A DNA stretch of 64,000 bases from Lytechinus pictus (taxonomy: Eukaryota). The stretch is taken from the NCBI RefSeq assembly GCF_037042905.1, contig NW_026974140.1, positions 10,168,001 through 10,232,000 on the forward strand, given 5' to 3'. Under the pieces are notes generated by a model that was given only the letters and a program-made list of their open reading frames with translations, made no database searches and was not told where the DNA came from. Within the stretch, counting starts at the first letter, position 1; each line of letters starts with the position of its first letter. Positions 799 through 29,222 of this stretch are shown here, piece by piece. The position numbers and the translations under genes were made by a program.

Positions 799-2607
799 TT
801 AATCATTATCTGGGGAAGTGAGTTTGGCTGTATCGTTAGACATGCTTTCTATCTCAATGTCCTTGTCCGCATCGTTCTCAGGCATGTCAGGAGTCACCTT
901 AGAGGAAGATTTGCAATGTATCACTGCGTATCTAATGCCACCTACTATGGCGGCAGTACCCGCCAAAGACACAATTACAATTCCTGCTATTGCACCAGAC
1001 GATAGGGGTTCCTCAGGGGGACTTGTAAGATCTCCATCTTTAGATGTCGTCTCTTTGGGTTCTCTGGTTGTCTTTCTTTCTGTATTGTTAGCGCTTGGCT
1101 CGGGAGTTCCCGATAATGCTGTTGATGCATTTGAATTACTGGTTAGGGTGTCGGTTGTAGAGCCAGAAGGATCCTGGGTTGGGGCATCGGTTGTAGAGCC
1201 AGAAAGATCCTTGGTTGGAGCATCGGTTGTAGAGCCAGAATGATCCTGGGTTGGGGCATCGGTTGAAGAGCCAGAAGGATCCTGGGTTGGGGCATCGGTT
1301 GTAGAGCCAGAATGACCCTGGGTTGGGGCATCGGTTGTAGAGCCAGAATGACCCTGGGTTGGGGCATCGGTTGTAGAGCCAGAATGACCCTGGGTTGGGG
1401 CATCGGTTGTAGAGCCAGAAGGATCCTGGGTTGGGGCATCGGTTGTAGAGCCAGAAGGATCCTTGGTTGAAGCATCAGTTGAAGAGCCAGAAGGATCCTT
1501 GGTTGAAGCATCGGTTGTAGAGCCAGAAGGATCCTTGGTTGAAGCATCGGTCGTAGAGCCAGAAGGATCCTTGGTTGAAGCATCGGTTGTAGAGCCAGAA
1601 GGATCCTGGGTTGAAGCATCGGTTGTAGAGCCAGAAGGATCCTGGGTTGAAGCATCGGTTGTAGAGCCAGAAGGATCCTGGGTTGAAGCATCGGTTGTAG
1701 AGCCAGAAGGGGCATCGGTTGTAGAGCCAGAAGGATCCTGGGTTGAAGCATCGGTTGTAGAGCCAGAAGGATCCTTGGTTGAAGCATCGGTTGTAGAGCC
1801 AGAAGGATCCTGGGTTGAAGCATCGGTTGTAGAGCCAGAAGGATCCTTGGTTGAAGCATCGGTTGTAGAGCCAGAAGGATCCTGGGTTGAAGCATCGGTT
1901 GTAGAGCCAGAAGGATCCTGGGTTGAAGCATCGGTTGTAGAGCCAGAAGGATCCTGGGTTGGGGCATCGGTTGTAGAGCCAGAAGGATCCTGGGTTGGGG
2001 CATCGGTTGTAGAGCCAGAAGGATCCTGGGTTGAAGCATCGGTTGTAGAGCCAGAAGGATCCTTGGTTGAAGCATCGGTTGTAGAGCCAGAAGGATCCTG
2101 GGTTGGGGCATCGGTTGTAGAGCCAGAATGATCCTGAGTTGGAGTGTCAACTGTAGAGTTTGATGGATCACTGGTTTCTTTTACGGTTGTATGTGTATGC
2201 TGGTCAGGAGTTGCAGAGTTCTCCGTTGATGTGATTCCATCTGAAGTTGCAGAAACGCCAGATTGGATGGTTACATCAGAAGTTACATAGACGCTTGTGG
2301 AGCTAGTATCATCAATAGTTGTAGAAATTCCCGTAGAACTAGTTCCGTCAGAAGTTGATGATAACCCCTGCGATTGACTGGTTGTATCATAAATTGTTGA
2401 ACTTCCCGGTGAGCTTACATCTGAGGTTGTAGCAACTCCTGGTGTACTAGTTTCAACAGAAGATATCGGACTCGTCGTAGTAATATTAGTAACATATATT
2501 GTAGTAATATCAGTAACATATGTTGCTGAAGATGCTTCCAACTTTGGAATGTAAGCTGTTGATATTATCAGCATCATTGCCAATCTGTATGTCACACGGA
2601 ACGGCAT
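799..2607 (-). CDS. Mucin/proteoglycan-like type-I transmembrane protein, paralogue A (602 aa, single coding exon)
   Basis: The ORF 799..2724 is longer than the likely CDS. A polypyrimidine tract and acceptor (ttatttccttcaatgcAG|G ATG, AG at 2610-2609) precede M40, which starts a signal-peptide-like MPFRVTYRLAMMLIISTAYIPKLEA. A T/S-rich region, 28 SGS-containing repeats, the TM segment LSSGAIAGIVIVSLAGTAAIVGGIRYAVI and a ~37-aa tail follow. Confidence 0.85.
   Translation of the reverse strand: MPFRVTYRLAMMLIISTAYIPKLEASSATYVTDITTIYVTNITTTSPISSVETSTPGVATTSDVSSPGSSTIYDTTSQSQGLSSTSDGTSSTGISTTIDDTSSTSVYVTSDVTIQSGVSATSDGITSTENSATPDQHTHTTVKETSDPSNSTVDTPTQDHSGSTTDAPTQDPSGSTTDASTKDPSGSTTDASTQDPSGSTTDAPTQDPSGSTTDAPTQDPSGSTTDASTQDPSGSTTDASTQDPSGSTTDASTKDPSGSTTDASTQDPSGSTTDASTKDPSGSTTDASTQDPSGSTTDAPSGSTTDASTQDPSGSTTDASTQDPSGSTTDASTQDPSGSTTDASTKDPSGSTTDASTKDPSGSTTDASTKDPSGSSTDASTKDPSGSTTDAPTQDPSGSTTDAPTQGHSGSTTDAPTQGHSGSTTDAPTQGHSGSTTDAPTQDPSGSSTDAPTQDHSGSTTDAPTKDLSGSTTDAPTQDPSGSTTDTLTSNSNASTALSGTPEPSANNTERKTTREPKETTSKDGDLTSPPEEPLSSGAIAGIVIVSLAGTAAIVGGIRYAVIHCKSSSKVTPDMPENDADKDIEIESMSNDTAKLTSPDND
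1150..2145 (-). repeat. Coding 36-bp tandem repeat (DPSGSTTDA[P/S]T[Q/K]), about 28 units
   Basis: Unit on the + strand is ggatcctgggttgaagcatcggttgtagagccagaa. There is one in-frame 24-bp short unit near 1700-1730, and variant units occur in blocks. Confidence 0.95.
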
Positions 2608-3914
2608 CCTGCATTGAAGGAAATAACACACAGAGACATTAATGACATCACAGTTTTGGAAAAGGGAATCTGTAGATGATAATTCAGCCTGTCCGATTGG
2701 ATATTGTATATTTCTCATATCCATAATACGAAAATTTCATTTCAATTGCATGTACCTTAGAAATTGCATTTGCTGTTAACGATATCGCATCTCAATTTCT
2801 GATGTGTACCATATAAATTACCATTTCAAATCGTCTCTGATGCCATTGAAATGTGATATCTATGTTTGTATAACTTTAGTAGACAAGACTGATTTATTTT
2901 TCTTTTCAATGTTGATCATGATCATATCTTATTTGTAAGATGATGTAAACAAGAACAATTGGAATTAATCGCTTGAAAATGACGGCCGAGAGATCGGGCT
3001 TTCAAATAATATATGATAATATTCTTTTTTTTTTAACTTGTTTTAATCGCATTATTTTGATGTAAATTGACTATTCTCTTATTAATGTTATGAAGCCATC
3101 TTCTCACATTGCTTTCTTTAATCTCACAGTCTGTTATGCAACAGCCACGCCAAACGATGGTCTGTCATTATAGTATTGGGATGTTCGCTTCGTGAAGCAC
3201 GACGGATTAAAAAACGCATTAAATATAATGAAAATGCCCGTCGAACGACAAGGGACAGCTGGGAGGTTGTTTCGGAGATGACGAAAAATTCCAAATACTT
3301 TGTTTTACCAGACTCCAGGACGAAACTGCTGTTTTGATTCACAAATTTCCGACAAGATTTCTTGGTTGTTAATGTTATGAATCGCATTTAACAACAATAT
3401 CTTTTCTGGGGCATGAATCCGTCGTGCATCGTAGATCAATAATCCCTTATCATCTTGAGCCCCTTTCACAATTGGTGGTGCGACTGCTTACAACCGTTGT
3501 GATTGTGTGCAACATATATTGTGACCAAGTGATCGCAAACGATCGCAAGAGCGATTGTGAAAGCCCCCTAGACATTAAAACTTATTATCTTATAAGATCG
3601 ATCAATAAAAAGAATATGATGGTCATTACATAAAGTTCTGTAATATCGGAAATGTAGAATTGTAGAATATCAATGCATGTTATAGACTTTTGTCAAAGCT
3701 ACAATCAATCTGATGGTAAGACGTCGGTATTTTTGTTGTTGGTCTGGAATCGGATTTAATCGGTTTTAGGCTTGCGCCAACATTACCAAAATGAAAAATA
3801 GTAATCTGTGTTATGGGACGTTGGTACTGAGTACAATAACTTTATTTTAAAGTATGAGATCTTGAAAATAATCATCTTTTACTTAGAACGCGGATAATGA
3901 AGTATATATATACG

Positions 3915-4886
3915 CACTATAAGAAATAGGGGTTCAAATTTGAACATTGGGGGTTGGCACAATAGCAGCACCCAAGGGGTGCTAATGAGTGCATTTATGC
4001 TCATTTTTGCACCTTTAAAGGTGTAGTATAGCTATATTAAAGGGATCCTCCATCCTGAAAATATTTATCTCAATGAATAGAGTAAAATTCACAGAGCAAA
4101 ATTCTGAAAAATTTATCGAAATCGGATAACAAATAACGAAGTTATTGAATTTTGAAGATTTGCATTATTCCGGTGAAACAATTATAAGCATGTCTTTATG
4201 AATATTCATTAGGTGGGCTGATGATGTCATATCCCCCACTTGTTCTTTTGTATTTTGTTATATAAAATTAGGTGTATTAAAAAAATTCTGCCAAGAAATA
4301 AAATAATTGGATTGACAACTGATTAAGTGCATTAGTTATTTTTTGCTGCAACTTAATTCATCATACTGGAGACACATAATTTACACATGTATGAAAAAAG
4401 TAAAATATGAGTTCAATGTAATAACATAAGAAAAAGGAAAGTGGGGATGTGACATCATCGGCCCACCTAATGAATATTCATGACGACGTGCATATAACTG
4501 TTTTCACGAAATATTGCTAAACTTTAAAATTCAATAACTTCGTTATTTGTTATCCGAATTTGATGAAATTTGCAGCATTTTGCTCTGTGAATTTTACTCT
4601 ATTTATTTAAATATGAATATTTTCAGCCCGGAGCATCCCTTTAAGCGACATATTGGTTGCAGTGTTGAACCACGCAATAAAGGTTCGAATTTGAACCTTT
4701 TTTTAATGTTCGGTATTATGCACCTTAAGAGGCGAATAGTTGCTCCTTTTTACGAACGAATCAAACGAGCATTTCTGGGTGCAAAATAAAAGATTCAATT
4801 GTGCACCTTTTTCCACTAAGGGTGCAAGATTACACCCAAAAGATTGGTACAGGTGTTTCAGTTAGGGTTCAAAAAGAATTTTAGTG
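3915..4886. mobile_element. CACTA/EnSpm-like non-autonomous element hosting a Kolobok MITE
   Basis: Termini are cg|CACTA...TAGTG|cg (2-bp flank duplication), with repeated tgcacc/ggtgca and ttcaaatttgaac internal motifs. Confidence 0.5.
4041..4640. mobile_element. Kolobok-type MITE (TTAA TSD, ~210-bp imperfect TIRs)
   Basis: ttaa|AGGGAT...ATCCCT|ttaa. The long arms are inverted, e.g. gaatattcattaggtgggctgatgatgtca versus tgacatcatcggcccacctaatgaatattc. Confidence 0.85.
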
Positions 4887-6139
4887 CGTAGTCACCCACA
4901 TTTAGGCAGCATGCTAATCATTCAATCAAGGGAAATTCACATAATTAATAATTATTCATTTTAATATATGCGCTGTCATTTCCTAGCTATTAAATGTATA
5001 GTTTTTCTGTCTACTTAATTACCCCTTTTCAGTCATTCTCAATTTTAGATATACATTAAGAAGGCTCACAACTTTCTCCAATCTCAAATCGTATGTATTT
5101 ATTTTCATATATGCGCACCGTCCAAGACCTTGAGAGTAATTACACATCCATAATGCTCAGGTATTCGCATATAGCAATATCGACATGATGATAAATGAAT
5201 GCAAAGAGAATGTCATTTAACTGGGGAGCACCAAATTCAGACTGCTTCCATATACATATTTTGAAAAGCCATTTGTGATATTTTCGACAGAATATAGTGT
5301 TTGCTCAAGCATGGATCAAGGCTTACAATAAAAGAAAACCAGCGGAGCAAAAATAATGATTTAAAAAATGTGTTAAAATAATGGTACTTGGAGTCAAGTT
5401 TTCTTTTTCTTTTTAATAATGTCTTTCGCTAGTCTAAAGCGTACCATTTACAAATAAATCTTCTATTCATTACATGTATTATCTTTTTATTGCCAGCTTT
5501 CTTTTTTTCATTTAAAAAAAAATGAATTCGTTACTTATGACATTCGGTTTTGGGACAAGGACCAGTGAGAACATTTTCTTAAAATCAAGAATGGGTGGGG
5601 CAAAAAGTGTCTGATCTCAAACGGGTGGGGCAAGACCCCGCTGTTAATCTACATTGGTGAGAACCCTGGTGTGAATACAAATTTATCTATTGTTATAGGC
5701 GTTGTCTCACAACTTGTCTGTTAGAAGTGACTTTTGAAAATCCATCCAGCAGAACCAAACCTAATTTTGAAATATCATTTGGACAAATTTATTTCCTATA
5801 AAGAAATCTTATTTTGTTGTCTTTATGTGTAGATGTAATTGTGTATTATGAGTATAACGTTGATGATGGGAGGTGGAAAAATAAATGAATTCATTATATT
5901 CTAATAGAAGGTTTTGAATTTTACAAATACAAAGTCAAAAGTATGAATGTTGAAAATTTAAAGAAAAATAAATGATTTCATGAATTTAGTTATGGCCTAA
6001 TTTTAGTGATATAGGGAAAATTAATAGACTTGTAGAAAGAAGAAGAGAGAGAAACCGGAGAGGAAGAGAGAATGTTTGCATACATAATTGTTTTAATTTT
6101 AAAATCATAAAATGCAATGCTTAAAACATGTCCATCGGA

Positions 6140-6320
6140 ACTCACCTTTTAATGATGTTTTATCTCCAAAATAATCCAAAATCTAAGAAGAAGCACTGCC
6201 TTGCAGGTGAGACGCATCCAGCAGAAAGTCAACCTGATCGATTAACTGCTGAAATCTTGAGTATTCAATGAAAATTATTCAACTTCTCCGATATCTAAGA
6301 GAAACGTTGACCAATCAAAT
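6140..6320 (-). promoter_or_regulatory. Candidate promoter and non-coding first exon of paralogue A
   Basis: Consensus donor AAG|GTGAGT on the minus strand (exon end 6146) and tgATTGGt (CCAAT box) at 6311-6315. It would pair with the acceptor at 2609. Confidence 0.45.
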
Positions 6321-6737
6321 TCATCCATTTAATCAGCTTTATTAATTAGCAATGCTTGTTGACTGTTGACTTATGAAACACACAAATGAAACCATGTTCA
6401 GTTAATAATTATCTATGTTTGTCCTATCAGTATTTTCCAATACAGTATCAAGAGGTTTCAGAAGTGTACTGTAGTGTATGCTTATCTCCAAACTATTGTT
6501 TGAGGAAAATCATTAACATGTTATAAAGCTATTTTGATGACACTGACTAGAAATTCAAATTCACTTTAAAGATAATGTCTTCGTCCCCAATAATCTTCTG
6601 CTGATAAATCCGATGTATATGACAATAATTATGGCTAAATAATGAGGTTTTCATGTCTTGCCCTTGCCTTCGGTTGAAACCTTAATCATGTTAATAGTCT
6701 TGGCCTTTGTCTTATTTTGGTGGTGGTGGTGTTGGTA

Positions 6738-6937
6738 NNNNNNNNNNNNNNNNNNNNNNNNNNNNNNNNNNNNNNNNNNNNNNNNNNNNNNNNNNNNNNN
6801 NNNNNNNNNNNNNNNNNNNNNNNNNNNNNNNNNNNNNNNNNNNNNNNNNNNNNNNNNNNNNNNNNNNNNNNNNNNNNNNNNNNNNNNNNNNNNNNNNNNN
6901 NNNNNNNNNNNNNNNNNNNNNNNNNNNNNNNNNNNNN
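6738..6937. other. Assembly gap (other gaps at 11156-11497, 13317-13700, 41998-42131)
   Basis: Runs of N; the first is flanked by a (TGG)n microsatellite. Confidence 0.99.
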
Positions 6938-7100
6938 TAGCAGAATGAGGAGCAGTGATAGTCAATTAATTATATATTGGATTTTATTGCGATAAAACTA
7001 TTAAAATACCATCTTGAACCCTTGAACCTTGAAGAAGTACTCTCCCAAAAGCGTACACGCTGTTTCTGGAGAGGGTTGTGCTGTGTCAGGTGCTGCCAGT

Positions 7101-7689
7101 CCCGGGGGGGGGGGGGCACTCAGTATATAATGCATAGTGGGTATGTGCCGCGGAGGGGACCCCCATTTTTACACTAAAATTTCCGTTCCAAGGCATAACA
7201 TTTTGTCTTATTGAGAAAAGGAACAAAGAAAGCCGCTCCAAAGCATAGCATTTTCTTCTTATCGTGAAAAAAAAAGAAGAAAGAAATCCGCTCCAAAGCT
7301 TCGCATATTTTCCGTTACGCCTTTCCGGCCGCATTGATCTGCTACTAATACAATGAGCCGCAATTTTGGTGAAAAAGCGGCCGCAGAGCGCTGTTTCACT
7401 ATCGCCTCTGTGCTAGCGCACCCGGCGCCCGTGCCGCTGGGCTAGCTGCATGCACGTACGCCTGTTCCATGGGGATGCTTACCACGTATTTAACTCTATG
7501 ATGCAAACGCACTCACACGCAGGCGACCCGTTCCAAGGACCCCCGTTTTCACAAACATTTGTAGTTGCAAAGCCCGTTCCGAGGACCCTCTTTTTTACAA
7601 TAAGCCCGCTCCAAGGCCCCCGTTTTTTGTCTCGCCCGCGGCACATACCGACTACTTTTTTGGTCGAGTACCCCCCCCCCCCCCCCCGG
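7101..7689. mobile_element. Non-autonomous TIR element with CCCGGG-poly(G) termini, superfamily unassigned
   Basis: cccggg(g)n-cactc...ggtatgtgccgcgg versus ccgcggcacatacc...gagta(c)n-gg. The flanks gctgccagt/gctgcagt resemble a degraded 8-9-bp TSD. Confidence 0.7.
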
Positions 7690-8008
7690 CTGCAGTGCTT
7701 CAGGTGATGTGGTGATCCTGTGGTGGTATTCTTGGTGCACTATATACAGTGTGCTAGGTGCAGTGTGCGGGTGGTGCGTGTGTGTCCCTCTTACAGTCTT
7801 ACAGCATTTTAAGGGGAGGAGGAGGCAACATTTTGTTGAGTGAGGCGGTAACTTGGGTAAAAACTTATCTACACTGTAATAAGGCCCCGAAGTTACATCA
7901 TGGTTATATTGGGAACCTGAGGAAGTAGTCAAGAGGTATGGGGCACGTTTCATAAAGCGAAACAACAAATCGTTGAGATTGTAACTTTGCCATTATGGCA
8001 ACTACCAT

Positions 8009-9787: not shown

Positions 9788-11707
9788 GCTATTACTAAGC
9801 GTTAATTCTGACAGAACTATAAAAACGAAACATGACAAGATGACCATTCACTTGACAACTTGGAGATTATAACCAATACATAATTTAATATACATGTAGG
9901 ATCGATACAGTTATAATTTCATCACGAGTAATATTCTGTTTGCTCCGCCAAGCCGACTTGTCAACCGTGTCAACAGACTTTGGGTCCAAAGTCTGTTTTC
10001 TTGATGAAGTACTTGATTAATTAGGCATACAGCTATCTCTAGTTAATCATTAAACCTCTTTCAATCTCAGAACAATAGGATTTTATGTGTGATGATGGTC
10101 GATGCATTCGGTCCCGTGGTTATGTTACCATGGAGATATTAAGATATGCATTTTGACTTCCGCGCGGTTAATGGACATTCTTTTGATACCAACCCTGAAC
10201 CCTGTTCTTTAACATTCACGCTAGAAATGTGCTTCATTTTGTTTCATCTTGCATAGTGATAAATGAAGCCACAATTATTGGTAATATTACTGCCCTTTTC
10301 TGCTTCCAAGGCTCCTGAAAGGTTAAGTCCATCCTTACAGCAAGTTTATTCTATTGAATAGAAAAAGAAAACGATACATTAAGATTTTAATCCGAAGTGG
10401 ATTTTAAGTAAGAAAGACAAAAGAACAGCGTTCAAATAATAGCGTCAGTGAGGTCACCGTCACACACACACACGCACACACACACCCTCACCCACCCCTC
10501 TTACGCACACACACACACACACACACTCACTGTTTCTTTTCTTTTTATTTGTTTTTTATTTCAAGAAATTTTCATTTTCGCAGATTTAATCAAATCTTGC
10601 ATTACCCTATGGTTACAGCATGATTAAATGTGTCATGTTACACATCACAAACTGCAAAGGATGGTGAGTGTGCTACGCCGTCATCTCCATCATCCTCGTT
10701 TGCATACTGCATGTAACTTTTTTGTGAAATAAAGCGAAACATACAATGACTTGTTTTGTTCAACGTCCGATTAAGATGATGTTCTAATGTTATGCGTATT
10801 TGATTCGTCTCTATTCATTGAAATAAATTGTAATGCTGGGCTTGACATAATCTTTTTAGGCATACTAAGAGGTTTAATGGACAGGCTAACCACAATGTTC
10901 ACAAGGTTTATATTCATGTTCGTTGGATGTTGATAGCACTGGTTTTGTGATGAGATTATCATCTTAAGAAATTTAACTATACAGCGATAAACTGCTATAT
11001 CATTACATATAATCATTAGAGTTTCAAGATTTTCTATTCCATAATCATCATGTGGATTAATTTCCTCATTTATTTACTCTTTTCTGCAAGATAAAGAACC
11101 GTTGCCATTGTGAGAGTAATGGATTGCGTGCCAGATGGTAGTATGTGATATGGTANNNNNNNNNNNNNNNNNNNNNNNNNNNNNNNNNNNNNNNNNNNNN
11201 NNNNNNNNNNNNNNNNNNNNNNNNNNNNNNNNNNNNNNNNNNNNNNNNNNNNNNNNNNNNNNNNNNNNNNNNNNNNNNNNNNNNNNNNNNNNNNNNNNNN
11301 NNNNNNNNNNNNNNNNNNNNNNNNNNNNNNNNNNNNNNNNNNNNNNNNNNNNNNNNNNNNNNNNNNNNNNNNNNNNNNNNNNNNNNNNNNNNNNNNNNNN
11401 NNNNNNNNNNNNNNNNNNNNNNNNNNNNNNNNNNNNNNNNNNNNNNNNNNNNNNNNNNNNNNNNNNNNNNNNNNNNNNNNNNNNNNNNNNNNNNNNNAGT
11501 CATGAAGCAGCAGTAATGGCTATGGTATCATTGCAGCAATAATCTCATAATGTTCGAAACGTTTTACATGTTTTTTTTTAATTACTACGGACGCTTTCGT
11601 CGAAGCCATGAAATCTTATACCGCTAATCAAACACCCTGAAACAGGCTTCATTCATCCCATCACATACCATTTGGTGAGCTAGCAACAACGTCGCCATAG
11701 CAGCCTG

Positions 11708-11926: not shown

Positions 11927-14668
11927 ATATTTGAGGAACATCTATTTAAACTTCAATATCTTTCAAAATCAAAATAGTGTAATGCTATAGTTACAAGATG
12001 GATCGAGCGTAGAAGTGAGATATATATATAAAAACAGAGAAAATATTTATTCTTCTTGTGTTTCGATCGATCATTCTGATTTCATTACTAATGTTCGTTA
12101 AAGATCTTTTCGCTAAAACTTTTATCAATAAATATTTTTCACCTTTTGTGTAGGTCTTCTGATAGAACCATAATTCGAGTATAACGAAATATAGCAGCAG
12201 GAATATTTCGCTCAAGAAAATTTTCTCGTTAATGTCCATAGGTTTGATGTATAGGACGATGAAATTACTATGTTTCCGACTAAAAATAAATATCCTTTTA
12301 TTACCAGAAATAAAAGTGTGAAAATAAATATTCATAATTGTATCACTTAAGATTAACTTCAGCAAGATGTTAATTATTATTCAGTTTTAAAATCGGTTTG
12401 CATTACTAATAGATATTAGGCAAACTATTGGTACTATCACGATCATGATTATGCTAATTTCAGAAACAATTACTTCGTATTTTTCTTATCCAAAAATAAA
12501 AAAAATTGTCAGTTCAGTATATTTTACAGCCCTTGATTGCAGCTTTGTAACTTGCGTCACAGCAGTTTTCCTTATATACATAGTTCATTAAACGAAATTT
12601 TGACAGCCGTTTCAAGCAAAATTTCCTTGAACATAATCCAATTATTTGTAGTATTCTTGTATATATATCTGGAAAATAAGTCGGGGAAGGCTGTCCTGTG
12701 TTTATACCGGAAGAATGCACATAAGGTTGACCAACGAAACGACAAATGGAAATATTGACAAATGTGATTAGGGTCATCATAATTATACACTGACCATAGA
12801 CATGATGGAGTTAGCTCCTTGCACTGACAATGTGGAGTAAACAACATGGAAAGTTGTATAAGTTTTTAATAGGTTTACAACCAATCGACAAGAGCTAATC
12901 TTGCAACTATATTGGCCCATATAAATGAGCTTAATTAAAGCACTCAGATAAAATCGCACAGATTGTTAATTTCAGTTGATTGTGCAATATTTTTAGAATG
13001 ATATACAAATTTAAGAATCAATAATGTTTTAAGGATAAAGGTGTGCTGACCACGTATGTCATTGAACCTAAATTAAAGGTATTAAGTATTAAAGGTACCT
13101 AAATTAAAGGTATTAAGTAGCATAAACGCCACAATTGATCTAATGATTCATTCCTCGGTGGATTCATGATTATAACTGTGGTCGTCGATGCCTTCGTCAT
13201 CGTCACAGTTGTGCTTCTATTTTCATGATTATTAAGATACTAACCATGGTCTATTTAATAGCTCTGCAAACCATTATAACAACATTTTGAAGTTCTTCAT
13301 TTATTGAACGAATGAANNNNNNNNNNNNNNNNNNNNNNNNNNNNNNNNNNNNNNNNNNNNNNNNNNNNNNNNNNNNNNNNNNNNNNNNNNNNNNNNNNNN
13401 NNNNNNNNNNNNNNNNNNNNNNNNNNNNNNNNNNNNNNNNNNNNNNNNNNNNNNNNNNNNNNNNNNNNNNNNNNNNNNNNNNNNNNNNNNNNNNNNNNNN
13501 NNNNNNNNNNNNNNNNNNNNNNNNNNNNNNNNNNNNNNNNNNNNNNNNNNNNNNNNNNNNNNNNNNNNNNNNNNNNNNNNNNNNNNNNNNNNNNNNNNNN
13601 NNNNNNNNNNNNNNNNNNNNNNNNNNNNNNNNNNNNNNNNNNNNNNNNNNNNNNNNNNNNNNNNNNNNNNNNNNNNNNNNNNNNNNNNNNNNNNNNNNNN
13701 GTCCGCAAGCAGTATGAAAATGAGAATTTTTAGCTATATCATGAATATACAAAAAATAACGGGTTGAGGGCATACCCTTGTGGAACTCAAAATGATACAT
13801 TCTGATTTGTCACCGTTAACGATATACTGAATTCGATTTGATGATGAAACCAATCAAGAACATTGTATCTGTATCTCTGATTCCATTATTTTGTTTTTAA
13901 GAAGTATGTGAAAGTAAGTCTCACCTTCGAGAGATACAAGATTATACCATGATGAAAATACCCTTATCTTTGTTTTGTATTATTTTATGAAAGCATATAT
14001 GAGCATATAGTTTTTATGAAAACCAAAGCGGTGTGACGTGTGAGATCAGTGCATCGTCCTGATTAGACTTCGAAAAATCAGTATAACGTGTAAATGCATT
14101 TTCCTTATAATTTCGAGAAGAGCTGTGACACATAAATCAGTATCAAATATATTTGGTCATTAATTATATAACAATTAAATAATTTGAACTCCTTTGAACG
14201 CTTTGTGCATTAAAAAAAATGTTGAATACAGTATATACAGTATAACATAGCGGATTTATTATTTTTAACACCGAAAATTTTGATTTTCATGAGAAGCCAA
14301 TCTTTAACACTTCATTCATATTAGTAGGTCTCAAAATCATTTATTTAATATGATTGCTAAATAATAAGCTCATGAAGTCAGTGTTACATCCAGAAATATC
14401 ATTAACAATATTTCTAATGTATGCTTTGAAAATAATAATTTCGTCGCAGCTTTCAGGAGATTGATTTTTATAATACATTTCCCCCGCGACCATTCTAGTT
14501 CTGTTACAGCAGTCATTCCTTTATAGCAGGTGCTATTTGAACAGCTTTATATTATTTTCTTATATTTGTATTTAAACATGGTCTAGTGTATTTTTAAAAG
14601 GAAAACACAGAACTTGTTGAAACGAAAGTGAAAGTTTGAATACAAGTACGATATGAACTGTGCATAGC

Positions 14669-19778: not shown

Positions 19779-21455
19779 ATGGCTTCTCCCAAGAGCATCG
19801 CTGTTCTCTGCCTCTCGATTTGCATCAGTGCCCTTCTGTCTGGGATTTGTGAAGCTCAAACTACAGACTTAATCACTATCGATACGAGTGCACCGACAAC
19901 AGCACTGGATACGACTGATTCAGCGACAACGTCACAAGACCCAACTGATACAAGTGCCCCAACAACTGAAGCACTGGATACGACTGATTCAGGTGCAGCG
20001 ACAACGTCACAAGACCCAACTGATACAAGTGCCCCAACAACTGAAGCACTGTATACGACTGGTTTAGGTGCAACGACAACGTCACAAGACCGAACTGATA
20101 CAAGTGCACCAACAACAGCACTGGATACGACTGATGCAGGTGCAGCGACAACGTCACAAGACCCAACTGATACAAGTGCCCCAACAACTGAAGCACTGTA
20201 TACGACTGGTTTCGGTGCAACGACAACGTCACAAGACCCAACTGATACAAGTGCACCAACAACAGCACTGGATACGACTGATGCAGGTGCAGCGACAACG
20301 TCACAAGACCCAACTGATACAAGTGCACCAACAACAGCACTGGATACGACTGATGCAGGTGCAGCGACAACGTCACAAGACCCAACTGATACAAGTGCAC
20401 CAACAACAGCACTGGATACGACTGATGCAGGTGCAGCAACAACATCACAAGACACCACTGATACAAGTGCACCAACAACAGCGCCAGACACCCCTGATCC
20501 AACAAATGCACCAACAACAGCGCCGGACACCCCTGATCCAAGTGCACCAACAACAGCGCCAGACACCCCTGATCCAACAAATGCACCAACAACAGCGCCG
20601 GACACCCCTGATCCAAGTGCACCAACAACAGCGCCAGACACCCCTGATCCAACAAATGCACCAACAACAGCGCCGGACACCCCTGATCCAAGTGCACCAA
20701 CAACAGCGCCAGACACCCATGATCCAAGTGCCCCAACAACAGCGCCAGACACCCCTGATCCAAGTGCACCAACAGCAGCGCCAGTCACCCCTGATCCAAG
20801 TGCCCCAACAACAGCGCCAGACACCCCTGATCCAAGTGCACCAACAGCAGCGCCAGTCACCCCTGATCCAAGTGCCCCAACAACAGCGCCAGACACCCCT
20901 GATCCAAGTGCACCAACAGCAGCGCCAGTCACCCCTGATCCAAGTGCACCAACAACAGCGCCAGACACCCCTGATCCAACAAATGCACCAACAACAGCGC
21001 CGGACACCCCTGATCCAAGTGCACCAACAACAGCGCCAGACACCCCTGATCCAAGTGCCCCAACACTTGGATCAAACACCCCTGATCCAAGTGCACCAAC
21101 AGCAGCGCCAGTCACCCCTGATCCAAATGCACCAACAACAGCTTCGAAAACCCCCGATCCAAGTGCACCAACCGAAAAAAAGACTACACCCCAGCCTACT
21201 GAAGGTGCCGATCCTACAACAAGTCCTCCAGAGGAATCCCTTTCTGCTGGTGCCATTGCAGGTATTGTCATTGGTTCGGTGGTGGGAGCTGGAATCATTG
21301 CAGCTGGTGTCGGATACGCTATCTATCACTTCAAAACAGTTACACAGGTTGCTCCGGTCAGCAACGATATTGAGATAGCGAACATATCTACGGACAATGT
21401 CGTTGAAATAAACGACAAGACAAATCTAACACCACCGGATGATAATCAACCGTAA
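19779..21455 (+). CDS. Mucin-like type-I transmembrane protein, paralogue B (558 aa, single coding exon)
   Basis: Acceptor catttcttttctctttccaatttAG|aaaATG; clear signal peptide MASPKSIAVLCLSICISALLSGICEA; two PTS repeat arrays; TM segment LSAGAIAGIVIGSVVGAGIIAAGVGYAIY; tail containing QVAP and DIEI. Confidence 0.9.
   Translation: MASPKSIAVLCLSICISALLSGICEAQTTDLITIDTSAPTTALDTTDSATTSQDPTDTSAPTTEALDTTDSGAATTSQDPTDTSAPTTEALYTTGLGATTTSQDRTDTSAPTTALDTTDAGAATTSQDPTDTSAPTTEALYTTGFGATTTSQDPTDTSAPTTALDTTDAGAATTSQDPTDTSAPTTALDTTDAGAATTSQDPTDTSAPTTALDTTDAGAATTSQDTTDTSAPTTAPDTPDPTNAPTTAPDTPDPSAPTTAPDTPDPTNAPTTAPDTPDPSAPTTAPDTPDPTNAPTTAPDTPDPSAPTTAPDTHDPSAPTTAPDTPDPSAPTAAPVTPDPSAPTTAPDTPDPSAPTAAPVTPDPSAPTTAPDTPDPSAPTAAPVTPDPSAPTTAPDTPDPTNAPTTAPDTPDPSAPTTAPDTPDPSAPTLGSNTPDPSAPTAAPVTPDPNAPTTASKTPDPSAPTEKKTTPQPTEGADPTTSPPEESLSAGAIAGIVIGSVVGAGIIAAGVGYAIYHFKTVTQVAPVSNDIEIANISTDNVVEINDKTNLTPPDDNQP
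19880..21170 (+). repeat. Coding tandem repeats: 72/75-bp units (about 8) followed by 36/39-bp units (about 20)
   Basis: TDTSAPTT(E)ALDTTDAGAATTSQDP from ~19880 to 20470, then DPSAPTTAPDTP / DPTNAPTTAPDTP to ~21170. Confidence 0.93.
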
Positions 21456-22496
21456 AGTGATTTCAAGAGAGACATGAATATCATATTCGAAGTGGCTATA
21501 TGATTTATTATTGGTTTGTACATGGATGTGACATGGAATGGAATCCTTAGACCGTATTCACCTTTACGCGGTGGCAAGCTGTTTCTAATGGATCTAGACT
21601 GTGCTGCTTGAACACGCAATATGTGTCGCGGTTGAAAATACAGTTTCAGAGTTCAATTTATCTACATTTGTCTTTGCAGGAATTTTGCAAACAAAAACAT
21701 AATATATTTTCTCGGTGGAAGCATCTGCTACCAAAATAAATGTTGCCAAAATCAATGATTTTGTTTTTATCCCATTATTTCGCAAGTACACATTCAACGA
21801 GCGAATTTAGTCATATGTGGCTTCCCATAAGTATTGCTGATATGAAGTTTCATTATCCATTTTAATGCTGAAAGTATGACAGAGATCAATAAGCTACCCT
21901 AGAACAATATACAATCATACTATGATGGGCCAAACCCGGCATAATTCTTTTTCTCATTTGTAGTTCTAGTTCACAAAATTGTATAATGATTGATGACATA
22001 GAATCAAAAGGACCAAACTCAACAAGTTCGATAACATTCGTTTCCTTACAAGATGTTTTACAATGAAATCAAGGTTTAAGCGCGAGATACTTAAAGTACA
22101 CTGTTCCGCCTTTCTTTCTTGTGCGGCGATATTAAATTAAATTGAAATAGGGAAGGGGCGCAATTACACTTCTGTTTGAGCGCAGCATGTATTTTAAATG
22201 GTCAAGCAGAACCCATATGACACTCTCTTAAGTTGAGCTAGAGTGTTTAAAATAATTATCACGCTTATTGAGAACATTCAAATTTGTCAGCATTCCAATA
22301 CTGATGACTGAAAAGCACAAATGCTAAAAGTTTTTCCAGTCTGAATGCCTTGCGAAGTCATTTCATTGACATCAATTAAGATGCAGTCACTACAAGAGAC
22401 CGATTTTAGACCGGTCAAAGAGAGTATTATTTATTTTAAATGTTATTTTGAATGACAAATATCAGCGGATTTAGGAATCGTTTTGTTGGTGTGACT

Positions 22497-22979
22497 CAAT
22501 GGCGGATCCAGGGGGAGGGGGCATTTCTGGCCCGTGCCCCCCCCCCCCCTTGAGTGTCATAGTCAATATTTTTAATGTAGTTATGTCGTTCATACGCAAG
22601 TGTTAGTCTGCTGTGCAAACCCTTTACTCGAGTAAAGGGTCTGAATTGCAGCCTACTCATGCCTTGTGTACTTAACAGCAAGTTTTGTATGTGCTAGTCT
22701 TTGCGTGGAGACACACTTGTAGATCAAAGTTTCAATCAGGGTCTTTGCCTGCAGACTATACACAAGTGTGTCCTCCCTCACTTTGACAGTAACAGCAAGT
22801 ATTTTTATTGGGAATTTGTCGCTCGTACACAAGCGATGTCCTATTTATTTTGCTTGTCAAATTTAACGCGGGACAAAAGGACATTCATTTTTTGGTAACA
22901 ATATATTTTTTTCCTCGTCAAATTTTCCTTGGGTACATGTGCCCCCCCCCCCCTTTGGAAAATCCTGGATCCGCACTTT
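22497..22979. mobile_element. Degenerate hAT-like MITE
   Basis: Termini caatggcggatccagg...cctggatccgcact with poly-C/G tracts, the same terminal style as 41293-41532. No TSD recognised. Confidence 0.55.
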
Positions 22980-24400
22980 CAAACAGAGTATATCTTCCTT
23001 CAAACTTTTATGATAATCCAGCAGCGATTTAATTTTGACCGTTGGTGGCTTTATTAGAATAATAAAAATAGATTCTTTCCATCATGTCCATAGGGTCTGG
23101 ATCCATTGCTTTTATTGAATTGACTTGTTGATACCAGAAAGCAGTTTATTATTCTTTTTTTTTTTCGAGTTTTCTTTATTTTTCTTTCAGCACATGAAAA
23201 TTAAAGAAATCATCAGAATATATATATTCTGATGGAAAGATAGTGGATCACCCTCTTTTGCAAAATAACTCTTCTGGTTTTTTTTATTAGTTGGTACTTT
23301 GTTTTATTGTAAGTAAAAAAAAAGTGTCTTTGAAAGATAATATTTTAATAGAGTTTATGTATGTATATATTTGTAATGTTGTATTTCATACATCATAATA
23401 CGTAAGCAATCTCAATTTTCAATCATTATAGTAGCTGAGCCACACCGTGCTTATTATTTAGATCGTGATTGATCTAGAATAAATTGTATTTTAAGACTTT
23501 GTAGATGAAAAAAGTTTTTCACCATAGAGATATATTGTATCTCTATGATTTTCACACTTTTTTTTAAATTCAGTTCAATACATTGAGTTTATTCAACAAC
23601 CCTCCTTCTCTCTCCCTCTCTCCTTCTCTCTCTTTCTCTCTTTAAAAAAATCAACTTTATATTAGTGCACATGTAATATTAAAAATATGTACATTCCATC
23701 TTGCGATTATTATTTTAACTTTTTAGTATGTGGTCAAATATATTTTTTCTCATTGAAACTAATGAAAATATATATGATTAATTCTATGCAACATGCAGGG
23801 CACAGAGTGGTTCTCGAGCATGCAATCAATCGGAATTTTAAATATATTTATACTAGTAATAAAACTAAGTTTCGGGACTTGCCTTTTTATACAAGCTCTG
23901 CTTTTCTTGACAAGTCCATCTGTTCAGTTAATTCATCGTCGATATGTGTTATAAAATATCAATGAACTGTATGTATTATTTTGAACATGTACTTGTACTG
24001 TTACTTCGATTATATTAATTTGTTGAACGGAAATAAATAAATCTTAATCTAATTCTATACTTATTTTATTGTTTGAGGAAATTTGCTAATTGTGATAATG
24101 ATAATGATTAATTTATCATGTATTTACAAAATACAGTCAACGATATCAACGTAATATTCTTGATGAAAATTATTATTATTCTTTAATCAATGAAACTGAT
24201 ATTGCACAACTTCACAATACTTCGCATTTATTTTTAGAAGTTCCTGTAGAGAACACTTATTTCGTGTCCCTTTTTTCGTAAAAGGGTATTTAAATCATAT
24301 TTGGACAGTTTCAAATTATCATTTATATTTCGAATGATAAAATTATGTATTTTCTGAAATGTAAATGGTTGATATTCTCGTAGCATTGATTATAATTCAA

Positions 24401-24876
24401 AGGGGAGGGTCACCCTCTTGGTTTAAAACAAGCAGAAACAGAGAAAAATATTTGTGAGGGTTTGCTGAAAATCTGTCGAAAAATGACGGTGTTATGAAGT
24501 TTTAAACTTTTGATTTCGTGACCTCACGTGTGAGTAGCTTCTCCATTGTATATCATGGTATGTAAATTCCCAAAAGGCTATTTTCTCAAATATATGGAAA
24601 TTGACTTTATATGTACGGTTAATATAAGATCAGAAACATCATTTTCATACTCCCTTCTATAAGCAGAATTTTGTATTCATCAAATTCCATTAAAAGTTTG
24701 AACTTTGGAATTTATATACATAAATATATTTATAGGGAGGCTGCTCGTATATGACGCTACAAACATAAAACTTGAGATATTTATAACTCTTTTATTAATT
24801 GGATTTCCATCAAACATTCACCGATATTTTCTCATATTTTCTGCTTTCATTAAAAGCATAAAGGTGAGCTTCTCCT
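24401..24876. mobile_element. Older Kolobok-type MITE
   Basis: tcaa|AGGGGAGGGTCACC...GGTGAGCTTCTCCT|tcaa with degenerate long arms. Confidence 0.65.
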
Positions 24877-26186
24877 TCAACTTCATGTTGACTTACACAT
24901 TATTTTAATAGAATGTTACCAGCTTATTCACCAAAGTTGGGGTGTTTTAAACCTGAAATGAAAACATTTTCAAAAATTCAACTTTGTTGTGAAATTCTTT
25001 GGTATATCGTCTTTTTTTACTAATACTCAAGAAGGTAGACGAAAACAAAGCATTCAATAGATAGTATGTACTATAGTCAGGATAGTTCAGAGAATACAAC
25101 CATATATGCCTTTAATATATTTTTTATTCATCAGGACACCTTGAGATATAGTATTCAAGATCATTGTATTGTCATCATCGCTCTTTTTTTTTATAGAAAT
25201 ATTAGTCAAATTTAATCATGTCGTGTCGGTGTATTGTAACGACTTTTTGCATTTATAGTCTTGTAATTGGTCATTTTGAAATATAAATATTTCTCAGAGA
25301 GTGTACGTTGAGAGGTGTCATCTCTTTCCTGTTGAAGAGTGTATTATGTTTACAGTGAATGAGATTAAATGCAAATTATTTCCATTTTATGTTGACGTGC
25401 TCAAGCGTATATAAATGATTATTGATATTGGGTTTGGAATCCTTTTTCCCTTCTTTTTCTTTTCTCACTAAAAGGATTTTTTTTTAAATCAAATAAACAA
25501 TTATTTTCTTCACAAATCTCTACATTTTTGTAAACATTAATTCATACAAAAATCAATTATTCATGAAGTTATGTTTATAGAAGAAGGCTCGAATGCCTCC
25601 ACCCCTAAAATTCAGTTGGTTAGGTTTGAGAGCAAATGGAATTCCTTTTGTGTTTACGTGTGATCTGGAACTTGAACTCATAGAGACAGGGGTGACCCCC
25701 CCCCCCCCCCCCCCATTCGATTTTTTTTTCAAGAAGTCGCTAAGGAGAAAGAGAGATGAAAGAAAGAAGGGTATAAGAAGAGTACAAACGAATACTACAA
25801 GCTTGTGTTTGTAACTTTAATAATCAATCCTTTATTGGGGACATAGTATAAACATACATGGGTTTTATTAGGCCTACTTGTCGGGTAAAGATACACATAT
25901 AACACATGAGAATATGTGAATTAGACAATTGTCATGGTTATGGATCATGACTTTCATTATTTGGTCTATTTTGTTTGGGCTTTTTCATTAACAAGCAAAA
26001 TAGGGAAGGATATTATTCGTACAAAAGATGACGTAAATACATTTATTTATATATTCCTTCAAAAAATCTGACAATCAACAGAGATCATTCCGCCATTGGA
26101 GCGGAGTGTACTTTTGAAAAAGAAAAATATGCGTATAGGCCTTCGTTATAACAGGCCTATGCACATGATGCATATAAGGTTAGGTT

Positions 26187-26506
26187 CATTGGTGTCGATC
26201 ACGTGGGGTGGGGGTTATATCCTCCCCAATATTTTAGGTGGGAGGATGGCCTGTGTCATCACCCCCCCCCCCCAATAATTCACGGGCGAACATCACAATA
26301 TTTATGATGAATCATATAATAAATATAATCATGGTAGTTAATAAATTTTGCCCTTCATGCCATGCCTGGCCCCTAAAAAAACTAGACTCTTTTAATACGG
26401 CAATCAACCCCCCCCCCCCCCCGAAAAACCCTAAGTCACAGAGAAATAATATTCTGTGTCATTCATCCCGCTCCCCCATAACCCTGACCACCGATCGACA
26501 CCCATA
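26187..26506. mobile_element. Short copy of the hAT family seen at 32091-34475
   Basis: Same termini, cattggtgtcgatcac...gatcgacacccat, and similar first ~90 bp. Confidence 0.75.
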
Positions 26507-28073
26507 TAGACTGGACCTCAATTAAATTTGTTTCAACAATTTGTGTTTCTTCCCTCCTTGATCTGGTATATGACCCCTGACACATCATCGGGGACATCTC
26601 ATCTCTTTTATTTTTCTTCATATTTTATCTTCTTCTACTGAGCAGTCTGGATCTCTGCATGGTCAGAGTATGGACCTATTACGAGGTCCATGGTCAGAGG
26701 AGTTTGTACTGGAAACACAAATAATGTGATCATTAGTTTGTGCTTGTGCCATGCAATGCCTGAAATTTAATAAGTTAGTATGGCAACCTTGACTTTCATA
26801 TTTTCGGAGAGATATATTAATACAGCGGCTCTTGTCCGGGTGGGAATAATGGGTATGGTCCCCTCGCTTGCTTCCGTAGATTCCTATTCGATAATACCAT
26901 GTTGAAACCTTAATAGGAAGTTTTCGTTCAGAGACGTACGGCGAATTGAAGAACATAGAATATATATTGCATAATGCACTTCATGACAAAGAACAACCAA
27001 GTAAGTTTCTGTCGAAAATTGGTAAATCGAATCAGCAGTTAAGCTCTTGATTCTGGACAAACGAAACATTTGCAATTTTTCATCTGCTCTAGACTACAAA
27101 AAAATGCTGTTCTGGTTCACCAATTTTCGACAAAGACTTTTTAGCTGTTATTTGTCATTTGATGGTCATTTGCGTATATCGCTGAGCGAAACTCACACTA
27201 CCTTTTGCGTCACCTCCCTTTCCCTACCCCTCCCCCTCCCCCGATTCAATCATTTCTCAGTTCCATATTCTTTATAACCAATAATGCACCATAAGAAACG
27301 AGATTTTGTTGATTTTCCTCGTTATAAATCATCGGTTAGTACTTTGTACTACGCCCAGTATTCAATCAATATATATTCCACTGAAATAGTTAAGAATCTA
27401 GATATTTATGAGAAGTTTTATGATTAATGTCATGGTAATGGGCACAACATTGTGGCAATGCTTACGCCCATCTATATGTTTTTTTTTTTTTACATTACCC
27501 TTCTGCGGTAACAACACCAATCACGAAGAACGCTGTCATCTGTGTGGACGTTTGAATATCAATGTTGGTAGAGATATAGAAATTCTCAGAGGAAAACTTA
27601 ATTTTGGAATATTTTAAGAGAGAATTAAAAGGTTAGTGTATTATTGGCAAGTTTTGAACAAGTACATTTTGAACCAATACATTTTGGTAATCCATGATCT
27701 TTTCTAGATTGAAGTTTTCTAGAAAAATTAAAAGAAGTGGAGAATGTTTGGGAGTATGTCATCTTTAAAAAAAACCGTTATTCCCATCTAATGTCTAGAA
27801 ACTTCCATCCCCAAACCGAGCTACCCTCTTGCTCCCACCTCTCTCTTTCATTTTCTTTATCTCTCTCACGTGTCAACTGGCATTGGGTAACACTAATACA
27901 AACCTGAAATCATTTCCCCTTAAGCATCAACGAACCACCAATTTTTAATTATGTGAAGCAACGCCATGCCACCCTCTATCACAAAACACCAACGAATTTT
28001 ATGATGAATTAAAATGTCAGGCATGTATGATATCAAAATTGAATTAATTCTTTATCCTTAATTCTCATACAGG

Positions 28074-29222
28074 ATGGCCACCAAGCTTACCGGAATGAGA
28101 CTGCACAAATGGATCGTGTTATTCTATATAATGCATAGATCGATCATGATAACTGCACCACACACCATGGCAATGTCGCCGATAAATATAACAACCGATT
28201 CCACAACTGCTGCAACAACAACAGCAGATTTAACAACATTATCAACAACCGATTCCACAACTGATGCAACCACATCAGATACAACAACGTCACCAACAAC
28301 CGATTCCATAACTGATCCAACAACATCAGATACAACAACGTCACCAACAACCGATTCCATAACTGATCCAACAACAGCAGATACAACAACGTCACCAACA
28401 ACCGATTCCACAACCAATACAACAACAGCAGATACAACAACGTTACCAACAAACGATCCCACAACTGATGCAACAACGGCAGCAGATACAACACCGTTAC
28501 TAACCACAGGAGAATCAAACATAACATGGACAATCATTGTGACTGCTACAGCTACATCACCAGGTGCGAGCATATCCGATACTGAAATCCCATCAACCAT
28601 GTCTACTACAACTGCATTCACGCCGTTAGATACGGGCACAACTGCAGATATAACTACCACCTCCGCTACAGTAACAGCAACCACAGAAAAAACAACAGCA
28701 CTAATGGGAACATCTGATCCAAGAACACAAACCACAGCGCCAGACAACCGTGATCGAAGTGCACTACCATCAATTTCAGACACCCCTGAAACTCTCGATC
28801 CAGATGTACCAACAACCACGCCCGAAACCCATGAAACTCTCGATCCAGATGCACCAACAATCACGACAGAAACCCCGGATCCAAGTGCACCAACAACAGC
28901 GTCAGGAAACCCTGATCCAAGTGAACCGGTTTTGATTACTACATCCGAGGAAACATCTACTAGAGATGAAGATTCTACAACAAGCTCACCTAAAGATTCC
29001 ATATCGTCTGGTGCCATCGCGGGTATCGTCATCGGATCATTAGCAGGAACTGCTGCTTTGGCAGGCGGTGTTGGAGTTGCTGTGTATTATATGAAACATA
29101 CCATGGGTGATGCTACAGTTACGCCAACCTATTCCAGTCAGAGCAATATTCGTATGACGATGATGGAGGAAGGGGTTGCAGGAAACCATCCTAATGTGAC
29201 TGGCAAAAACAACGTAAAGTGA
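28074..29222 (+). CDS. Mucin-like type-I transmembrane protein, paralogue C (382 aa, single coding exon)
   Basis: Acceptor tctttatccttaattctcatacAG|G ATG; hydrophobic N-terminus; ~51-bp repeats (TTDSITDPTTSDTTTSP); degenerate DPSAPTT units; TM segment ISSGAIAGIVIGSLAGTAALAGGVGVAVYY; tail with TVTP. Confidence 0.85.
   Translation: MATKLTGMRLHKWIVLFYIMHRSIMITAPHTMAMSPINITTDSTTAATTTADLTTLSTTDSTTDATTSDTTTSPTTDSITDPTTSDTTTSPTTDSITDPTTADTTTSPTTDSTTNTTTADTTTLPTNDPTTDATTAADTTPLLTTGESNITWTIIVTATATSPGASISDTEIPSTMSTTTAFTPLDTGTTADITTTSATVTATTEKTTALMGTSDPRTQTTAPDNRDRSALPSISDTPETLDPDVPTTTPETHETLDPDAPTITTETPDPSAPTTASGNPDPSEPVLITTSEETSTRDEDSTTSSPKDSISSGAIAGIVIGSLAGTAALAGGVGVAVYYMKHTMGDATVTPTYSSQSNIRMTMMEEGVAGNHPNVTGKNNVK

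Follow-up and report, generated by a model that had tools for sequence, protein, structure and literature searches.

A probable tandem family of domainless, mucin-like membrane proteins upstream of WBP4 in the sea urchin Lytechinus pictus

Introduction

Three open reading frames (ORFs) in the genome of the sea urchin Lytechinus pictus, here called A, B, and C, encode predicted proteins with Ser/Thr/Pro-rich tandem repeats and without recognizable domains. They lie in a stretch of 64,000 nt (contig NW_026974140.1 of assembly GCF_037042905.1, positions 10,168,001 to 10,232,000 of the forward strand; hereafter, the window). Repetitive frames of this kind raise the question of whether they are genes at all and, if they are, what kind of protein they encode, how their repeats arose, and whether they belong to a family already described. 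An initial annotation, made from the sequence alone, regarded them as a three-gene family of transmembrane (TM) mucins with a conserved membrane anchor and independently rebuilt ectodomains. Here, we report that A, B, and C probably constitute, with another gene, A′, a tandem, mainly sea-urchin family upstream of WBP4, whose products are best regarded as domainless, type I, single-pass membrane proteins of the mucin-like kind.

Results

A, B, and C are intact ORFs with a common layout: a hydrophobic leader at the N terminus, tandem repeats that are acidic and made up of Ser/Thr/Pro, a TM segment, and a tail of ~40 amino acids (Table 1). Leaders and TM segments were judged by Kyte–Doolittle (KD) hydropathy, with a 10-aa window for the leaders and KD19 for the TM segments. 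One KD19 peak (1.8–2.5) was present in every member, indicating a single TM segment near the C terminus; in A, the peak, at 2.26, corresponds to residues 534–563. The strength of the leaders, expressed as the best 10-aa mean, was 3.13 in B, 2.25 in A, and 1.43 in C. The ectodomains are composed of 37–47% Ser and Thr, 9–20% Pro, and about 15% Asp and Glu, with an isoelectric point (pI) of about 4 (for A, the corresponding values are 46% Ser and Thr, 14.5% Asp and Glu, and an ectodomain pI of about 4). The mature ectodomains of A, B, and C contain no Cys, since the three Cys residues of B belong to the leader, and the only one of A is located at the cytoplasmic edge of the TM segment. The tails are 37–46 aa long and have a pI of 4.0–4.8, except for that of C, which is basic. 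No Pfam domain was found at the gathering score in A, B, or C, and no SEA, EGF, or vWD domain was matched between the repeats and the TM segment in these proteins or in their relatives. Thus, the layout that the initial annotation had assigned to the ORFs of 602, 558, and 382 aa was borne out by the ORF list and by alignments, the divergent orientation of A and B and the tandem orientation of B and C by the ORF coordinates, and the Cys-free ectodomain without a folded SEA, EGF, or vWD domain by the composition and the Pfam scan.

Transcription and splicing of C were observed directly. Contigs from sequencing run X3 span positions 28071–29832 at a word depth of about 27 with no differences, and a 521-nt contig from the same run links positions 27139–27629 to 28071 onward, skipping 441 nt with GT..AG borders (cut +2; donor AAAAG|GTTAGT, acceptor CATACAG|G). 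In the spliced form, an in-frame stop is located six codons 5′ of the ATG. An unspliced contig of C was also present in X3, at a depth of 2. The depth of C was zero in run X18 and in X21 and X22, two deep RNA-seq runs depleted of ribosomal RNA. X18 covers the region only patchily, and therefore represents RNA and not genomic DNA. The absence of C from X18, X21, and X22 thus indicates that its expression is sample-specific. B is very probably transcribed as well: eight RNA-like runs, X4–X7 and X18–X20 among them, contained 0.62–0.82 of its sampled words.

Polypyrimidine-AG acceptors precede the ATG in five genes, at a distance of 1–3 nt in A, B, C, and A′ and of 24 nt in a gene of the sea urchin Diadema, described below. 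The B acceptor, ...ttctctttccaatttag, ends three bases 5′ of the ATG. In the case of A, the full ORF (799..2724, minus strand) comprises 641 aa, and the 602-aa form begins at the Met codon at 2607; this start agrees with that of the annotated paralogue P0002 (MPFR...), and is located one base past the acceptor ...ttccttcaatgcag|G. A single coding exon following an intron in the 5′ untranslated region (UTR), which had been proposed for the three genes, is shown directly for C by the spliced contig, and is implied for A, A′, B, and the Diadema gene by the acceptors found 1–24 nt before the ATG and by single-range models of the coding sequence (CDS).

The non-repetitive leader and TM/tail parts are conserved among the paralogues and across genera. 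Alignment of the C-terminal modules (the last 80–110 residues) revealed 40–53% identity to A, in agreement with the claim that the TM segment and tail are conserved while the repeat units differ. The modules of A, B, and C share the invariant core S-x-G-A-I-A-G-I-V-I-x-S..G......G...A....K, and tblastn comparisons between them across the window gave E values of 1e-13 to 1e-16 and three copies only. The tails of the family conform to the pattern K-x3-(K/T)VTP...DIE(I/V)...(M/I)S...(A/T)xLT, and, judging from the alignments, it is this pattern and not the beginning of the TM helix that defines the family.

To find relatives, a family profile consisting of the three TM/tail modules was used for an exhaustive search over 1.84 billion representative proteins. 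Full-module matches were limited to P0001 (167 aa, E 1e-20, an unlabelled UniParc entry), P0002 (277 aa, E 4e-19, L. pictus), P0003 (206 aa, E 1e-13, an "uncharacterized protein" of Diadema setosum), and P0005/P0135 (125/229 aa, E 9e-9, ENA assembly entries without an organism label); a second profile search added P0137 of Diadema antillarum. The remaining ~130 matches align only to the start of the TM helix (LSxGAIAGIVIG), and those examined were fungal, Dictyostelium-like, diatom-like, crayfish, and starfish SEA-mucin proteins. A word-indexed protein search with the C-terminal region of B, and also with P0001, returned the query only, in an index that requires shared 5-mers and similar length. 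No publication on this family, and none mentioning its accessions, was found in the literature searched. As found so far, the family thus appears to be restricted mainly to one lineage, its organism-labelled relatives all being sea urchins and a few further entries being unlabelled, as the initial annotation had anticipated. The accompanying claim that domain-based annotation would miss such genes was only half right: A′ and both Diadema genes have NCBI models, which are named just "uncharacterized protein".

P0002 lies on the same L. pictus contig as the window (JAZDCF010000019.1), and is therefore a paralogue (A′) and not an orthologue. The exact protein of B corresponds to a called gene on this contig of GCA_037042905.1, with C called 6.6 kb downstream. 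Instead of the three genes originally counted, the L. pictus genome thus contains at least four, A′ being just outside the window. The block shared by A and A′ comprises the gene and 6.5 kb of upstream flank with 82–94% DNA identity; the similarity has one of its limits precisely at the stop codon, and the other 6.5 kb upstream. The two blocks are separated by a 7.6 kb unrelated spacer, and no gap occurs at either block boundary. This pattern fits segmental duplication better than stacked haplotypes.

The position of the family relative to its neighbor is also conserved. The Diadema setosum gene consists of a single coding exon located 8 kb upstream of, and on the same strand as, a gene encoding zf-U1 and WW domains, i.e., WBP4. 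In the window, a WBP4 exon is found downstream of C, and 27 of the 27 amino acids that it encodes recur unchanged in one exon of the Diadema gene with PF06220 and PF00397. Comparison of the two loci thus shows that the linkage to WBP4 is conserved between Diadema and L. pictus, which answers the synteny question posed by the initial annotation. One family gene was found in Diadema within ±10 kb, versus four in L. pictus.

Two further observations concern the relatives. The Diadema members (L002:10001-10621 in D. setosum and P0137 in D. antillarum) have a CxxC pair just outside the membrane (SGECEDC and SGECEGC, respectively), unlike the L. pictus genes, whose ectodomains lack Cys. In GCA_022702875.1, a 73-aa exon (L004:4054-4275; protein P0006) encodes a TM/tail (GAIAGIVIGSVAGTAAIAGG ... 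VKPTDDIDL) close to the consensus of the family. Because this exon stands apart and no Pro/Thr/Ser (PTS) ORF is located upstream of it, it was left unassigned; it may represent a distant relative whose gene is built differently.

Tandem arrays were called with Tandem Repeats Finder (TRF), and the 36-nt units of A, B, and C were compared in pairs, with 5000 shuffles per pair. The units of B and C are identical at 31 of 36 positions, a level that was not reached by any of the shuffles. A and C units share 20/36 positions (reached by 7 shuffles), and those of A and B share 19/36 (reached by 107). In all pairs, the best rotation of the units sets GATCC (Asp-Pro) in register. A "DPSAPT"-type unit adjoins the membrane in B and in P0001, and variants of it do so in C and A. 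By sequence, the B and C units are homologous, and the A unit is probably related to them. The arrays are best read as the result of differential amplification of one ancestral 12-aa unit; on that reading, C would have gained its 17-aa array, and B would have built 24- and 49-aa higher-order units. The view that the ectodomains were rebuilt independently can therefore be retained only in part: C did add a 17-aa array, but the B and C units are nearly the same and the A unit is in the same register. Rapid diversification of the ectodomains was upheld, since the lengths of the members vary between 167 and 602 aa, and A and A′ contain 27 and 10 repeat copies, respectively, at a number of synonymous substitutions per site (dS) of about 0.05.

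With respect to known proteins, the closest architectural counterparts are the sialomucins CD43 (SPN) and PSGL-1 (SELPLG), whose complete CDS occupies a single exon that follows an intron in the 5′ UTR. Like these, the family members are, by hydropathy and Pfam analysis, type I proteins that cross the membrane once and whose ectodomain consists of Ser/Thr/Pro-rich tandem repeats without a folded domain, and a single exon preceded by a 5′ UTR intron contains their CDS (directly for C and by implication for the other genes). However, no sequence similarity was detected. CD43 and PSGL-1 have long tails with a basic cluster that binds ezrin/radixin/moesin (ERM) proteins, while the family has ~40-aa acidic tails with one or two juxtamembrane basic residues; in addition, the TM segment of the family forms a conserved helix of the glycine-zipper type, and its members are known so far mainly from echinoids. 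CD43 and PSGL-1 stand for an architectural class and not for a homology family. Membrane mucins with a SEA domain (MUC1/MUC13/MUC16 type, including the Patiria miniata "mucin-2-like" protein P0009) resemble the family in their PTS repeats and in a TM helix that starts in the same way, with LSPGAIAGIVVG, but differ in having SEA, EGF, or vWD domains between the repeats and the membrane and in their unrelated tails.

Small vertebrate membrane mucins were nearest by protein-language-model features (MUC15, MUC21/epiglycanin, PARM1, TMEM154, and glycophorin A, with a cosine of 0.83–0.90). They have in common with the family a leader, an O-glycan stalk (predicted in our case), a TM segment, and a short tail, and glycophorin A also shares the GxxxG dimerization logic of the TM helix. 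Yet these neighbors are a mixture from unrelated families, none of whose Pfam models matched at the cut-off, and the best language-model matches share 143 of 256 features, which is under the level typical of true family membership. An Atlas model of the Diadema member had low scores (pLDDT 0.46, pTM 0.20), which predicts a disordered protein. A search of PDB sequences gave only insignificant TM matches, e.g., to DAP12 and CD166. Weak matches to SNORC/DUF4690, DAP10, PARM, and Giardia VSP were far under the cut-offs and common to unrelated proteins, and were rejected. No match at a Pfam cut-off in A, B, or C places the family within one already characterized, in line with the initial annotation, which had regarded it as a candidate for an undescribed system.

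Several other explanations were weighed against these data. That the ORFs are non-functional, being low-complexity open frames or false haplotype duplicates, is suggested by the fact that repeat DNA holds several frames open on both strands, by the presence of N stretches in the region, and by the A/A′ comparison, where dS is only about 0.05, as can occur between sea-urchin alleles, and the ratio of nonsynonymous to synonymous rates (dN/dS) is about 1. We consider this highly improbable, since the non-repetitive leader and TM/tail are conserved among paralogues and across genera, C is spliced and expressed, B is found in RNA-like runs, and the boundaries of the A′ and A blocks, with the spacer between them and without gaps, point to segmental duplication and not to stacked haplotigs. 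All three N stretches (6738–6937, 11156–11497, and 13317–13700) are intergenic, between A and B, and overlap none of the ORFs; the reading frames are thus independent of them. Across the first, the paralogous block in the neighboring stretch L001 runs collinearly (276 nt there versus 260 in the window). A similarly small probability was assigned to a role as acidic membrane proteins of skeletogenic cells, of the biomineralization type. The sea urchin protein P16/UTMP16, which has a signal peptide, an acidic ectodomain, a TM segment, and a short cytosolic tail (PMC2758014), comes from the same phylum and has the same overall architecture and an acidic ectodomain. Its ectodomain, however, is Gly-rich and Asp/Ser-rich (phosphophoryn-like), while that of the family is Thr/Pro-rich. 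In a comparison by the published peptides, no P16 peptide quoted in that paper was present in any of the 164 proteins that the family profiles had retrieved, although P16 sequences are public.

Podoplanin is a small, acidic, O-glycosylated type I protein with GxxxG in its TM segment, as the family members are predicted to be. It binds CLEC-2 via PLAG motifs, and ERM proteins via a short (about 9 aa) basic tail. P0001 scored 33.7 bits against the podoplanin model PF05808 (gathering score 30; E 5e-8), and C scored 17.5 bits over its full length and 23.1 bits when its C-terminal part was used. Nevertheless, A, B, A′, both Diadema proteins, and P0135 gave no match at E<1. The module alone scored only about 20 bits, and the match was confined to profile positions 88–122, i.e., the juxtamembrane segment and TM start, with positions 123–135 unmatched by the family. 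When Pfam was run on 74 of the 134 family-profile matches, PF05808 was matched by 17 unrelated proteins that have only LSxGAIAGIVIG in common, and the cut-off was passed by P0001 only; no bona fide podoplanin was present among the profile matches checked, and database proteins already tagged PF05808 (P0141–P0144, P0148, P0151) were diatom-like or fungal-like. In the seven family members used for motif and tail checks, no PLAG-like motif was found with the expression [ED][ED]..[VT]TPG or with the looser [ED]D..[VT][TS]P, and their tails, at 37–46 aa and mostly acidic, contrast with the 9-aa basic tail of podoplanin. We therefore rejected podoplanin membership, the PF05808 match being an effect of a generic TM motif and of composition in proteins that lack the defining features, and regard an echinoderm counterpart of podoplanin as very unlikely. 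Somewhat less remote, though still improbable, is the view that A and A′ are cores of membrane proteoglycans that carry glycosaminoglycans on acid-flanked Ser-Gly sites of their repeat (D-P-S-G-S-T-T-D) and act as syndecan-like co-receptors, with B and C being ordinary O-glycan mucins. Ser-Gly with an acidic residue within 3 aa occurs 26 times in A and 9 times in A′, versus 1–2 times in B and C, and B, C, P0001, and P0003 have weak, sub-threshold matches to SNORC (DUF4690). But the A/A′ repeat lacks the fuller xylosyltransferase context generally known (several acidic residues plus G-S-G), the DUF4690 scores (11–17 bits versus a cut-off of 30.7) are matched by those of unrelated proteins, and the Syndecan domain (PF01034) was found in none of the seven members (it matched 2 of the 74 scanned proteins). 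Ser/Thr density is equally consistent with mucin-type O-glycosylation. Judging by these sites, A and A′ might carry glycosaminoglycans in addition.

Table 1. Coordinates of the family genes, their parts, and the WBP4 anchor (window positions unless stated otherwise).
Feature	Position	Strand	Description
Gene A coding exon	799..2607	−	602 aa + stop; leader, 27 x 12-aa repeat, TM, 37-aa acidic tail
Gene A tandem array	1151..2141	−	36 nt x 27.9, 93% matches, DPSGSTTDA[S/P]T[Q/K]; TRF
Gene A conserved module	802..1038	−	Juxtamembrane TSPPEE, TM GAIAGIVIVSLAGTAAIVGGIRYAVIHC, tail K..KVTP..DIEIESMS..AKLTSPDND; alignments
Gene B coding exon	19779..21455	+	558 aa + stop; ORF list
Gene B repeat region	19924..21172	+	147-nt higher-order units, then 72/36-nt units (DPSAPTTAPDTP); TRF
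Gene B TM/tail module	21207..21452	+	Glycine zipper GAIAGIVIG; 40-aa acidic tail
Gene C 5′ untranslated exon	27139..27631	+	Contig of run X3; 27139 is the limit of the contig, not a mapped 5′ end
Gene C 5′ UTR intron	27632..28072	+	441 nt, GT..AG; ends one base before ATG; spliced contig
Gene C coding exon	28074..29222	+	382 aa + stop; ORF list
Gene C 17-aa repeat array	28190..28504	+	51 nt x 6.1; TRF
Gene C membrane-proximal units	28777..28927	+	45-nt and 36-nt units (ETLDPDAPT..; DPNAPTTATENP), homologous to B unit by sequence; TRF
Gene C TM module	28980..29219	+	Conserved TM; diverged, basic tail, pI 8.45
Gene C 3′ UTR	29223..29832	+	At least 610 nt; 1452-nt X3 contig spanning 28381–29832
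A′ (P0002, LOC135157708)	L001:10001-10834, about 14 kb left of window start	Same as A	277 aa; NCBI "uncharacterized protein"
WBP4 exon, 5′ end of coding sequence	48037..48117	+	Starts zf-U1 region (ADYWKSNPRKFCDFCQCWFADNK); synteny anchor outside the family

Some additional features of the window were recorded. The 726 N positions at 11156–11497 and 13317–13700 are the sole differences from the corresponding locus of the public L. pictus record, with the 20,951 other positions compared being identical, and these two stretches may be masked sequence and not true gaps. Between B and C, positions 24600–25387 are transcribed: contigs of 1.38–1.40 kb, present in X18 at a depth of 62 and in X3 at a depth of 26, match it without a single difference and extend about 620 nt further left. 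This segment contains no ORF of at least 150 aa, and may represent an extended 3′ UTR of B, a non-coding RNA, or the transcript of a repeat. Raw RNA reads pile up at 25585–25781 and 26373–26569; their loose ends of poly-C/poly-G, and joints that run back and forth, suggest artefacts of homopolymers or of the library and not splicing. A very high-copy element occupies 29722–30500, where the word depth in RNA contigs reaches about 19,000 and variant letters are numerous; it has no Rfam match, and an Rfam scan of the whole window likewise gave none. An 86-nt inverted repeat (30063–30148/30515–30600, 91% complementary) suggests a transposon resembling miniature inverted-repeat transposable elements just past the C 3′ UTR. 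Further along, a 512-aa ORF at 62384–63922 (minus strand) is reverse-transcriptase-like, of the type found in retrotransposons without long terminal repeats; a second such fragment is present at 55399–55848 (minus strand), and a similar element occurs in L001 (tblastn match at window positions 63059–63733).

Discussion

The picture that we favor is that of a family of domainless type I membrane mucins. Each gene would consist of a 5′ untranslated exon, an intron ending 1–3 nt before the ATG, and one coding exon. After removal of the leader, the protein would present an intrinsically disordered, strongly acidic ectodomain (pI about 4) made of repeats with fast turnover, mostly derived from a common 12-aa/36-nt "DPSxxTT" unit. 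By analogy with mucin-type proteins, the ectodomain is most likely densely O-glycosylated; on particular cell types, the stalk would then extend from the surface as a negatively charged brush of glycans, which may serve as a glycocalyx, an anti-adhesive barrier, or a layer for ligand display. Glycan display, and the immune or gamete roles suggested in the initial annotation, are likewise conjectural. The TM helix is rich in small residues and begins with a glycine zipper, GxxxGxxxG (GAIAGIVIG). As known for glycine-zipper and GxxxG helices, it would be expected to pack tightly, either with itself or with a partner, and thereby set membrane organization. The tail contains Thr-Pro as well as acidic segments with Ser, and would couple the protein to sorting or signaling. 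The TM helix and the tail would be the sole parts under sequence constraint. C, with its diverged basic tail and restricted expression, has probably been sub-functionalized.

A number of observations weigh against this picture. The leader of C is weak or marginal by hydropathy. The TM-start motif LSxGAIAGIVIG is generic, occurring in fungal, diatom-like, crayfish, and starfish proteins, so that its conservation alone says little about a specific partner. A′ bears a Lys within the otherwise invariant GAIAGIVI zipper. Comparison of A with A′ gave a dN/dS of 1.15 over the whole non-repeat C-terminal part and of 1.66 over the TM segment and tail (the latter from 12 substitutions only), which implies that at least one of the two copies is not under strong constraint. 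Finally, a phylogeny of the modules resolves only A with A′, the two Diadema genes, and the ENA pair.

A bolder proposal is that the glycine-zipper TM helix and the K..VTP..DIEI..MS..LT tail form a dedicated, echinoid-specific signaling or sorting cassette, with fast-changing ectodomains on which diversifying selection would act as surfaces for recognition of self and non-self, gametes, or microbes. The sample-specific expression of C and the A/A′ dN/dS of at least 1 may be taken as first hints of such a role, which we nevertheless consider unlikely. If true, it would amount to a previously undescribed recognition system in a genetically tractable sea urchin.

The membrane mucins described here make up an uncharacterized family, but the class to which they would belong is an ordinary one, abundant in animal genomes, and a specialist would find this kind of protein unsurprising. 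A practical consequence concerns the PF05808 model, which picks up TM starts of the GLSxGAIAGIVIG type; "podoplanin" labels outside vertebrates should therefore be distrusted. The family itself can be searched for by its TM/tail module, its linkage to WBP4, and its single coding exon. The cluster illustrates how mucin ectodomains may be remodeled from one 36-nt unit around a fixed anchor, and, L. pictus being a genetic model, the role of a domainless membrane mucin in an invertebrate deuterostome would be approachable there.

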